Sequence record: NC_048054.1
Length of the DNA stretch: 64,000 nt
Direction: 5' to 3' (one strand)
The notes under the pieces were generated by a model. The model was not told where the DNA came from. It worked only from the letters and a program-made list of their open reading frames with translations, and did not search any database. Shown one piece after another: positions 2 through 8,108 of the stretch. A program made the position numbers and the translations under genes. Within the stretch, counting starts at the first letter, position 1. Each line of letters starts with the position of its first letter.

Positions 2-409
2 GCACTGCGTATGGGCCACTTGGTTATCATTGATACCGAGAGCGCCGAAGAGTACATGCGTAGCAGCAAACTGGCGCAGAAAGAAATGCGCAACCTGAAC
101 AAAATGAACGCGGCTATCTCGGCTGAGCTGGGCGAAGAAAGCGGTGAACTGCAAGCTATCGATCTGGGTGGCGGTGCTCGCAAGAAAGAAATCATCTTTG
201 AAGGCGGCGAAGAGTTCTCCAAAAACCAGTTCGTTAACGCATTCATCATGCGAGCGCAGGAAGACAGCGAAGAATCTGATGACAATCTGGAACGTGAATT
301 CCTGTCTCGCGGTCTCGGTCTGCCTGTATCTGAACTCAACATTCTGCGTGAGCACATCACTCGCCCAGCAATCGTTGAACTGATCGTTCAGGCTCTTGAC
401 GACGCGTAA
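2..409 (+). CDS. Hypothetical acidic protein, 5' end probably outside the window
   Basis: Frame is open from position 2 to stop at 409; followed by a terminator. Confidence 0.7.
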   Translation, partial: ALRMGHLVIIDTESAEEYMRSSKLAQKEMRNLNKMNAAISAELGEESGELQAIDLGGGARKKEIIFEGGEEFSKNQFVNAFIMRAQEDSEESDDNLEREFLSRGLGLPVSELNILREHITRPAIVELIVQALDDA

Positions 410-425
410 TCGACAAGCCATAGAC

Positions 426-464
426 AAAAAAAATGGGAGGCCCCGAAAGGAGTCTCCCATTTTT
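426..464. terminator. Bidirectional intrinsic terminator between convergent genes
   Basis: A-run, ATGGGAGGCCCC-GAAA-GGAGTCTCCCAT hairpin, T-run. Confidence 0.85.
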
Positions 465-465
465 A

Positions 466-645
466 TTACTGCTGCTGTTCTGTTTGCTTGCGTAAACGAT
501 CAAGAAGTCCTGACGATTCGCCTGGCTTAATCAAACGCGGTTCAACTTTGATGCGATTGATTAGGCGTTGCATACGACGAATGCTACGACTGCGTAATGC
601 TTCTACTGAGTGCTGCTTAAACTGCTTTCTGAATTTCAAAGCCAT
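466..645 (-). CDS. Small basic hypothetical protein (59 aa, MALKFRKQFKQHSVEALRSRS...)
   Basis: ATG immediately after the primase stop with AAGGAAAG upstream; below the ORF-track cutoff. Confidence 0.7.
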   Translation of the reverse strand: MALKFRKQFKQHSVEALRSRSIRRMQRLINRIKVEPRLIKPGESSGLLDRLRKQTEQQQ

Positions 646-3567: not shown

Positions 3568-4032
3568 ATGGAAATTTATGTAAGCCTGAGTCAGGACAGC
3601 ACGTACAAGAACCGCAGCCGCGTGTCTAGCCCTGAGTCTACTACTGGACGTGCGGACCTGTCCGACTATGCTTCATTGGAGAAGAAACTCCGTCTCACAG
3701 AAGAAGCCAAAGACAAAGAAAAACTAGCTCAAAAGGCTGGTGGCGGTGATTCTGTAAAGGGTAAGAAAGGCGCCAAGAAATCTGGTGAAACTAAACCCGA
3801 AGAAGACGATACTGACATTGATACCGATGGTGGTGACGATGAAACAGATGACGCTTCCGATGATACTGGAGACGACTCCGATGGAAAGTCTAAGGCTAAG
3901 AAAGGTGGAAAGAAATCTGACGCCGGTGGAGATGCTGACGCAGAAGACGCAGAAGACCCTGACGCGGATGAATCCGAAGGTGATGACGGGGATGCAGATG
4001 CTGAAAGCATTGATGACGAGGACCTCGAATAG
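3568..4032 (+). CDS. Low-complexity D/K-rich protein with N-terminal MEIYVSLS motif
   Basis: GAGG RBS; 154 aa; N-terminus shared with the 7797 ORF. Confidence 0.8.
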   Translation: MEIYVSLSQDSTYKNRSRVSSPESTTGRADLSDYASLEKKLRLTEEAKDKEKLAQKAGGGDSVKGKKGAKKSGETKPEEDDTDIDTDGGDDETDDASDDTGDDSDGKSKAKKGGKKSDAGGDADAEDAEDPDADESEGDDGDADAESIDDEDLE

Positions 4033-6028: not shown

Positions 6029-6759
6029 TCATGATGAACAATCTCGTTGGCCTTGTGGCCGCTCTGGACCATTGTCGCTTCTATGCGGAGAATATGGTTC
6101 ACATTCAATTCGGCAGTTCTCTCTGTGTTGTGCCTCCAGAGGCGCCATACAATCAACCAATCAATGAGCGTCGTCTGCACTCATTGGCGGAAAGCATCGA
6201 GCTGGCATTCGATAATGCAATCAGCCGCACCGATTTGGAATTTCCTATTCAAGGTATTCTCTATCGCTTCCGTTCTCTCTTTGGTCAGTACGCTGCGCAA
6301 TATCGTGAAGACCTGTCGCGTGGCAATCCGTACAAGGCCAAGCAAGAAACTCTGACGCCCGCAGTACCTGAGTGTCTGCCTGGTGAGCATGAGAAAGAGT
6401 TCGCATCACGTTTCCTCAAGTACACGGCAGACCAAGTTCAGGCATTTCTGACTATGGTGTATTTTGATCAGTACGCGCGTGAACAAACTGACTGCTGGCT
6501 GCCTGCTCCTGCTCCTGCGTTTGATCATCCCACGAACACCTTCAATGAAAGCCCATTAGCGTTTACGGCTACGCATAACGTTCTGGTCAATCATTTGATG
6601 GAAGCGATGCTGAAAACGTATAGCGATACGCTGGACATTCATGTGTCGTTGCGCGACTACGGCGTGTCTGTATTATTCCCACTGGTGGCTGAATGCCGTA
6701 ACGTGATTTACGCTGCATGGCCTATCCCGAACGCTAAAGGACAAAAAGCAAATGTCTGA
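6025..6759 (+). CDS. Hypothetical protein
   Basis: 244-aa ORF overlapping its neighbours. Confidence 0.75.
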   Translation: MIMMNNLVGLVAALDHCRFYAENMVHIQFGSSLCVVPPEAPYNQPINERRLHSLAESIELAFDNAISRTDLEFPIQGILYRFRSLFGQYAAQYREDLSRGNPYKAKQETLTPAVPECLPGEHEKEFASRFLKYTADQVQAFLTMVYFDQYAREQTDCWLPAPAPAFDHPTNTFNESPLAFTATHNVLVNHLMEAMLKTYSDTLDIHVSLRDYGVSVLFPLVAECRNVIYAAWPIPNAKGQKANV

Positions 6760-7285
6760 TTCTATTCAATTCGATAAACAAAATGAGTGGGAAGACTTCG
6801 GTAGCGCTGTCTACGAAGAATTTCGTCTGAACGTAATGACGGGAAGTAGCAGTGCCAGTCAGATCCCAACTGTCGCACCGTTCGAAGACGTGAAGCACCA
6901 ACTAAGCTATTCGAGCATTCTGCCTGAAGGTGAGCAGTCGCCTATCGTTGTGCTTGACATTCTTGTCATGGAAATCGATCTGGCTGAAGGTGAATCCAGC
7001 AGCTACAATGCAGACAGTCTGGACGAAGCTGTGCGTAAAGTTGTGACACTGTACCAGGCTCGCGCTCGCGATCTTGACTGCCACCTTACAGGCAACTTCA
7101 TCACAGCAGACCACAAAGTCAATGGTGCGCTGCTGCGTATCTATCGCAATCAGGACTTTGTGTGCAAAGGTCACCCTGAACTTCTGCATGGTAAACCGCT
7201 CGGTATGTTCCACTGCGACAAATGCGGCCAACTGCAACAGGCTGGCTGCTTCCACTTACCCAAAGAGGAAACTCAAAATGGTTAA
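6752..7285 (+). CDS. Hypothetical protein with C-terminal CxxC
   Basis: 177 aa; FHCDKCG...GCFH. Confidence 0.75.
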   Translation: MSDSIQFDKQNEWEDFGSAVYEEFRLNVMTGSSSASQIPTVAPFEDVKHQLSYSSILPEGEQSPIVVLDILVMEIDLAEGESSSYNADSLDEAVRKVVTLYQARARDLDCHLTGNFITADHKVNGALLRIYRNQDFVCKGHPELLHGKPLGMFHCDKCGQLQQAGCFHLPKEETQNG

Positions 7286-7745
7286 AGGTGGTCTGTGGCG
7301 AGTCTTCCCTGATTACGATTCAGAGGAGATGCTGCTGAAACTCGGTGCTGCTATCGGCATCGACCGTGATAGCGATGATGTGCCAGAAGAACTGCACGTC
7401 ACACTCGCCTATGACGAAACAAACCCTGACGTCAAAGCAGAGGTAAACGATGCTGGCGAGTTCTTCGCTACCGTCGCTTCTGCTGAACTGTTCGGCGAAG
7501 GTCAAGATAAGATTTTGGTGCTTGTGCTCGAATCGCCTGACCTACAACAGGAACACACTCGCATTCACGCATGTGGTGCAGCGGAGTTTTGGCACTCGCC
7601 GTATCGCCCGCACGTCACGTTGCTGAAACACGCGAAAGACAGTCAGGCTGAATATCTCAATCAGATCATTCAGCACCCAGGACGCCCTCCAATTACTCTG
7701 CGCTTTATTGATGAAGATCGCAAGGTGTTGGAGAAGCGTAGCTAA
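7278..7745 (+). CDS. 2H phosphoesterase, T4 gp57B/Acb1-like (candidate anti-CBASS)
   Basis: Two HxT motifs (LHVTLAY, RPHVTLL); LVLVLESPDL...H...GA...Y.PHVTL matches the recalled T4 57B pattern; GAGG RBS; 155 aa. Confidence 0.8.
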   Translation: MVKGGLWRVFPDYDSEEMLLKLGAAIGIDRDSDDVPEELHVTLAYDETNPDVKAEVNDAGEFFATVASAELFGEGQDKILVLVLESPDLQQEHTRIHACGAAEFWHSPYRPHVTLLKHAKDSQAEYLNQIIQHPGRPPITLRFIDEDRKVLEKRS

Positions 7746-7796
7746 AATCTAGCGGTGGCCTTGTGCTGCCGCTTTTGTCATTCTGGAGTAAATCCC

Positions 7797-8108
7797 ATGG
7801 AAATCTTTGTAAGCCTCGCACATGAGATTCGTGTTGATCGTCAGGACAAGCCAGAGAAATCTCAGCCTCTCGATGGTCAGCAACGCGCACTGGAGCAACA
7901 AGACCAGCAGCGCATCAAAGAGGAGTATGGCATTGATACGCCCAAGGAAGAGATTGAGCAGAAAGAGAAAGAGCGTATCGAGCGTGAGCAGGAACAGCGT
8001 GAAGAAAATAGCGTCAAGCCACCAGCAGATTTGGGCCAGCGCAAGCCTGATGCAGAGCTGACTGGTTCAGAGATTCAAGATCAACACGACAACCTCACGA
8101 AGATCTAG
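7797..8108 (+). CDS. Charged low-complexity protein with N-terminal MEIFVSLA motif
   Basis: GGAG RBS before ATG 7797; 103 aa. Confidence 0.75.
   Translation: MEIFVSLAHEIRVDRQDKPEKSQPLDGQQRALEQQDQQRIKEEYGIDTPKEEIEQKEKERIEREQEQREENSVKPPADLGQRKPDAELTGSEIQDQHDNLTKI

Follow-up and report, generated by a model that had tools for sequence, protein, structure and literature searches.

The closest described relatives of AD1_235, a gene lying in a 64,000-nucleotide stretch (the window, whose base 1 is base 186,001 of the record) of the genome of Dickeya phage vB_DsoM_AD1 (MH460463.1 / NC_048054.1), are the viral 2H phosphodiesterases of the Acb1 family. Acb1 of phage T4, the product of gene 57B, and nine of its homologues cleave 3'3'-cyclic GMP-AMP (3'3'-cGAMP) and cAAA (PMC9117128). 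In T4 Acb1, base stacking is provided by Y12, W74, F107 and W147, the adenine N6 is contacted by E141, the C-terminal lid comprises residues 145-152, and H44, T46, H113 and T115 constitute the catalytic tetrad (Hobbs et al., PMC9117128); the translation of 57B has every one of these contact, lid and tetrad residues at the same number. Another member, PDE-9 of the Burkholderia jumbo phage BCSR5 (9Q2G/9Q2Y; Doherty et al. 2025 preprint), still cleaves 3'3'-cGAMP when its lid is missing, its specificity residing in the core (bioRxiv 10.1101/2025.08.21.671373), and a relative from the Escherichia jumbo phage EJP2 is listed by Doherty et al. among 75 phage 2H phosphodiesterases. AD1, a jumbo phage of the genus Alexandravirus (261,658 bp, host Dickeya solani MK10), is mentioned neither in the text nor in the searched supplements of the Hobbs and Doherty papers, and the original AD1 paper contains no discussion of AD1_235.

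Family assignment and fold of AD1_235

AD1_235 (AXG67279.1; window 7278-7745, + strand), which translates into 155 amino acids and a stop codon and is annotated as the same coding sequence in GenBank (record 193278-193745), encodes a member of the Acb1 family of 2H phosphodiesterases. The protein matches the Pfam model Acb1 (PF23474) with 47.2 bits (cut-off 27, E 2.4e-12), a six-frame search of the phage genome gives 46.7 bits with the same model, and all 78 relatives collected by profile search carry PF23474. The superfamily model 2_5_RNA_ligase2 is matched with 28.2 bits against a cut-off of 27, whereas LigT_PEase (PF02834; 21.6 bits, cut-off 23.3) and the ThpR/LigT equivalog TIGR02258 of NCBIfam (26.3 bits, cut-off 65.7) both stay below their thresholds. 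A sequence search of the PDB yielded three matches with E<0.1, all of the Acb1 type: Acb1 of Erwinia phage FBB1 (7T26, also standing for 7T27; E 1.2e-3) and PDE-9 (9Q2G and 9Q2Y). Judged by the Pfam E-value and by the invariance of H40, T42 and H112 in the family, the similarity of AD1_235 to the Acb1 family is beyond chance. The original prediction, which was made from the DNA letters, had proposed an Acb1-like 2H phosphoesterase of 155 amino acids with two HxT motifs, and is upheld at the family level: the translation contains LHVTLAY (H40-x-T42) and RPHVTLL (H112-x-T114) as well as the segment ILVLVLESPDLQQEHTRIHACGA...YRPHVTL, the T4 string given for comparison is correct (STLVLVLDSEYLRCRH..GA..YTPHITL in 57B as translated from NC_000866), and pairwise BLASTP of AD1_235 and T4 57B finds 33% identity over 80 amino acids spanning both motifs (E 2e-7).

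The structural model of AD1_235 (predicted local distance difference test score 89.2) has the compact 2H fold and stands nearest to the solved Acb1 structures, as the original prediction anticipated. The best Foldseek matches are all of the Acb1 type, with 9Q2Y/9Q2G at the top (TM score 0.77) and 7T26/7T27 next, and in the structural comparison those of the LigT type trail the Acb1 type by 4 Z units; a best match to LigT/RNA ligase-type 2H enzymes, named in advance as one part of the contrary outcome, was not obtained. The model includes the core fold of PDE-9 with its helix inserted ahead of the last strand; like PDE-9 and unlike T4 Acb1, AD1_235 has at this place a helix, made up of residues 121-131, and the loop HPGRPP, together forming an insert of residues 121-138. 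Identity of AD1_235 is 22-23% with PDE-9 and 21-22% with the T4 and FBB1 Acb1 proteins, with which it has the tetrad in common. LigT/ThpR enzymes (5LDM, 1IUH) are larger (170-185 amino acids) and about 15% identical, and the penguinpox virus cGAMP phosphodiesterase (9BKQ/9CIW), which is encoded by a eukaryotic virus, bears a lid at its N-terminus and acts on 2'3'-cGAMP, is structurally much more distant.

The public labels of AD1_235 disagree, being 'putative cyclic phosphodiesterase' in GenBank and 'RNA ligase' in RefSeq. The protein falls into phrog_755 of the PHROGs database with 105 bits, as do T4 57B (228 bits) and BCSR5 PDE-9 (74 bits), and the label of phrog_755 is 'RNA ligase'. The RefSeq name is an inherited misnomer, with no evidence of a ligase behind it, because T4 57B, the founding Acb1, itself matches phrog_755 and bears the same name in RefSeq. 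The misleading label derived from phrog_755 is found on T4 57B (NC_000866.4 73952-74410, - strand), on NC_048054.1 193278-193745 and on relatives in dozens of phages. The assignment to Acb1 is not new, because databases already give this name to close homologues: an Erwinia phage protein 83% identical to AD1_235 and the protein of Erwinia phage Yoloswag are called 'Anti-CBASS protein Acb1' in UniRef (CBASS, the antiphage signalling system based on cyclic oligonucleotides).

Active-site residues and proposed activity

When T4 residues were mapped to AD1_235 by two alignments, the tetrad was found to be intact: H44 and T46 correspond to H40 and T42 in the first HxT motif (H40-V41-T42, 7395..7403, + strand), and H113 and T115 to H112 and T114 in the second (H112-V113-T114, 7611..7619, + strand). 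H40, T42 and H112 are invariant among 74 family members, and position 114 is T or S. The aromatic residue W74 is replaced by another, F72, as it is by F in FBB1; F107 corresponds to H106, with H also in PDE-9; and the family-conserved glutamate E138 is kept as E146.

The explanation that best accommodates these observations is that AD1_235 would be a metal-independent 2H phosphodiesterase in the structural group of T4 and FBB1 Acb1 and BCSR5 PDE-9, which probably degrades cyclic oligonucleotide immune signals and thereby would counteract CBASS. By analogy with those enzymes, H40/T42 and H112/T114 would perform acid-base catalysis, the ribose 2'-OH attacking the adjacent 3'-5' phosphodiester bond of a cyclic di- or trinucleotide, and the ring would open through a 2',3'-cyclic phosphate intermediate to give a linear product unable to activate its effector. 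If expressed in infection, the enzyme would remove messengers of the CBASS type (3'3'-cGAMP, for example) ahead of cell killing by the host effector. The most likely substrates are cyclic di- and trinucleotide signals; we infer both substrate and anti-CBASS role by analogy with the characterized members.

Several observations weigh against this interpretation. Identity to the biochemically tested enzymes is only 21-23%, and the match to PF23474 is confined to profile positions 31-120 of 144 and leaves the lid region unmatched; its ending at position 120 accords with changes in the lid and contact residues. By the alignment mapping, the AD1 subclade has substitutions at three of five T4 base-contact positions: Y12 is lost (L6 in AD1_235), the adenine contact E141 is changed to K149, and the lid tryptophan W147 corresponds to S155, the terminal residue. 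The equivalence of L6 and Y12 is derived from sequence alignment and from the alternation of residues along a beta-strand (E4-11 by DSSP), not from coordinates. In addition, a T4 Acb1 from which the lid had been deleted no longer triggered Panoptes (bioRxiv 10.1101/2025.08.21.671373).

The two ends of the protein are the places where other members have lids. The C-terminal tail E146-S155 (EDRKVLEKRS; 7713..7742, + strand), which by the alignments occupies the position of the T4 lid, resembles it in length (9 residues past the conserved glutamate versus 14 in T4), contains no tryptophan, and superposes to residue 154 on the closed 7T27 chain, the confidence of the model being low in this tail (59 over residues 151-155). 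At the N-terminus, strand beta1 (G4-P11, taken together with Y13; 7287..7316, + strand; assigned by DSSP on the model and by the mapping of alignment columns) is preceded by only 3-4 residues and so leaves no room for an N-terminal lid, whereas PDE-9 has a lid of 15 residues and Y at the Y12 position. A PDE-9-like N-terminal lid was considered and rejected: the structural alignment pairs residues 1-3 of the model with residues 14-16 of PDE-9, nothing in the model is equivalent to PDE-9 residues 1-13/15, and only 3 residues stand before the conserved glycine. Likewise rejected was W7 as the equivalent of Y12 (GGLW versus GLY), since the family alignment and the strand periodicity both give L6 and place W7 on the core face.

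Within the AD1 subclade (14 sequences, down to 74% identity), L6, R8, F10 and Y13 never vary, and 13 of the 14 members have K149; R8, F10 and Y13 are invariant in this subclade only. The sister clade of Erwinia phage Yoloswag and its relatives retains Y and E; in proteins of the T4 type the corresponding columns hold Y, A, K and E. In a quick maximum-likelihood tree, arbitrarily rooted, the AD1 clade is nested (Shimodaira-Hasegawa approximate likelihood ratio test, SH-aLRT, 99) within a 28-member clade that lacks the lid tryptophan (99); this larger clade has a loose association with PDE-9 and is separate from the T4 group. The pattern looks like that of a pocket rebuilt under selection rather than one that is decaying, and the range of substrates may therefore differ from that of T4 Acb1.

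A further well-supported subgroup of Acb1 proteins (P0037, P0038 from Pantoea phage Phynn, P0041, P0047, P0051, P0053 and P0058) has lysine at the position of the lid tryptophan (LDLDK), along with a long acidic C-terminal tail and an N-terminal extension of 14-21 residues, and by this combination of features may represent another lid variant.

Alternative functions

The alternative that deserves most attention, a real but less likely possibility, is that AD1_235 belongs to the same family and performs the same chemistry on a different set of targets, owing to a pocket of L6, R8, F10, Y13 and K149 and the absence of a lid tryptophan. Adenine might no longer be needed, other cyclic oligonucleotides (cA3 or those of the c-di-UMP type) might be cleaved, or the Panoptes decoy 2'3'-c-di-AMP might be spared, as it is by PDE-9. 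Such a shift is favoured by the replacement of the contact residues throughout a subclade that is well supported and nested in the quick tree, and by the report of Doherty et al. that specificity within structural group 3 shifts with minor differences in the core, PDE-9 avoiding 2'3'-c-di-AMP; but the group 3 enzymes tested so far are broad, all of them cleaving 3'3'-cGAMP, the residues lining the pocket are assigned by alignment rather than by coordinates, and the substitutions might be compensatory and neutral. A related and more specific proposal, which we regard as possible but doubtful, is that the Alexandravirus subclade constitutes a distinct functional variant of Acb1, having neither the lid tryptophan nor an N-terminal lid, in which a more basic pocket (L6, R8, F10, Y13, K149) would change the nucleotides that are destroyed.

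The names given in databases, 'putative cyclic phosphodiesterase' and 'RNA ligase', hint at a general RNA 2',3'-cyclic phosphodiesterase belonging to the LigT/ThpR or CPDase type, which would heal RNA ends (for instance on tRNA that host anticodon nucleases have cleaved) or remove 2',3'-cyclic nucleotides. This is improbable, given that both LigT-type models fall short of their cut-offs, that Acb1-type structures fit the model better, and that 'RNA ligase' is merely a PHROG label that T4 Acb1 bears too. Moreover, a search of the AD1 phage genome found no RtcB and no convincing RNA ligase (the Rnl1 search was also empty, but its positive control gave no match), the lone RNA-ligase-like signal being a sub-threshold match of 20 bits to RNA_ligase (PF09414) in a 653-amino-acid open reading frame outside the window. 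Least probable is that the protein has lost catalysis and persists as a relic, or that it binds the signal and sequesters it uncleaved: loss of the lid tryptophan and of the E141 equivalent would suit such a protein, but neither HxT motif is damaged, both being conserved throughout the clade, and the residues peculiar to the subclade are invariant, as expected under selection. Degradation of cyclic oligonucleotide signals by an enzyme of the Acb1 family is accordingly the reading preferred here.

Distribution in phages and host defences

The gene keeps its position in all 46 of the jumbo-phage records that share the region, with protein identity of at least 76%. Farther relatives occur in other phages of Dickeya, Erwinia, Pectobacterium, Yersinia, Salmonella, Klebsiella, Aeromonas, Vibrio and Pseudomonas, many of them jumbo phages. 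When 185,579 bacterial and archaeal species genomes were searched with two motifs of the clade, a single relative (63% identity) was found, and the AD1 clade is essentially restricted to phages. The single relative lies at 156-614 (+ strand) of JAVWLC010000206.1, a 4.8-kb contig in an actinobacterial gut metagenome-assembled genome named 'Raoultibacter sp.'; this is probably a phage contig that was mis-binned. Of 227 Erwinia phage genomes, 61 carry acb1 according to a 2026 survey that employed DefenseFinder, which also reports type I CBASS in some E. amylovora genomes (PMC13480210). In a Pectobacterium host, CBASS is both present and induced.

Pectobacterium phage vB_PcaM_CBB encodes a relative, CBB_118 (KU574722.1 59615-60061, + strand), annotated as a 'structural protein', which matches PF23474 with 58.1 bits and is 27% identical to AD1_235; its neighbours include genes for a nicotinamide phosphoribosyltransferase and a Sir2-like protein. 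Because CBB_118 was detected in virions purified on caesium chloride by electrospray ionization tandem mass spectrometry (7 unique peptides, 60.4% coverage; PMC5259590, Table 4), this phage may package an Acb1-like phosphodiesterase and deliver it with the DNA.

Start site and genomic neighbourhood

The start of AD1_235 at 7278 is sound on the evidence of the sequence and its homologues. A Shine-Dalgarno-like AAGAGGA (7263..7269, + strand), read directly from the sequence, is located 8 nucleotides ahead of the ATG, which overlaps the stop codon of the upstream gene (ATGGTTAA), and independently called homologues (74-93% identity) all start with MVKGG, MSNKGG or similar (MSxKGG). The longer frame that begins with TTG at 7074 was rejected as merely an open frame inside the upstream gene (6752-7285), GenBank and the homologues agreeing on the start at MVKGG. 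The original prediction had preferred 7278 to 7074 by reason of the ribosome-binding site, and was correct in this.

AD1_235 is the last in a run of small genes on the same strand, all of unknown function; upstream of the run are a primase and an exonuclease, and downstream are a sigma-like factor, a single-stranded DNA-binding protein and an intein-bearing RecA. The 'core replication cluster' to which the gene had been assigned is thus only an approximate description: replication genes are nearby, but AD1_235 itself ends a run of small genes that lies between them. Directly past its stop codon, a terminator-like hairpin (7751-7773) of 9 pairs, 6 of them G-C, is followed by TTTTGT (the whole feature occupying 7751..7779, + strand, 6 nucleotides past the stop). 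This is the longest of 11 sites found by a consensus scan, versus 3.8 expected, and its predicted fold has -16.9 kcal/mol with a z-score of only -1.46; it weakly suggests that AD1_235 ends a transcription unit.

The next gene, AD1_236 (7797-8108, + strand), begins with MEIFVSLA, and another open reading frame of the window (3568-4032, + strand) begins with MEIYVSLS. In T4, acb1 (57B) adjoins ipI, which encodes a packaged anti-restriction protein, and the likeness of this arrangement to the neighbourhood of AD1_235 and AD1_236 is suggestive only. No second 2H gene was found in the AD1 phage genome. The sub-threshold PF09414 match is located at 114211-114645 (- strand) of the phage genome, and the 653-amino-acid open reading frame that contains it is probably a DNA ligase.

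Implications for phage counter-defence

AD1_235 is in most respects an ordinary member of its family, and the discovery is a modest one, given that the family was already known, together with its chemistry and its distribution among phages; what is added here is the apparently variant pocket of the AD1 subclade. The assignment corrects the two misleading public labels for a gene found in no fewer than 46 Erwinia and Dickeya jumbo-phage records, some of these phages being biocontrol candidates against plant pathogens. It also places a likely counter-defence enzyme in a group of phages with very few described anti-defence proteins, Tad1 being the only one described in jumbo phages according to a 2026 review (PMC13282480). 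With its apparently rebuilt pocket, the AD1 clade would be an inexpensive and informative subject for studies of substrate specificity in viral 2H phosphodiesterases. If the subclade is indeed a functional variant, the requirement for adenine might have been dropped, or decoys such as 2'3'-c-di-AMP might be spared, and these phages could thereby escape both CBASS and traps of the Panoptes type.
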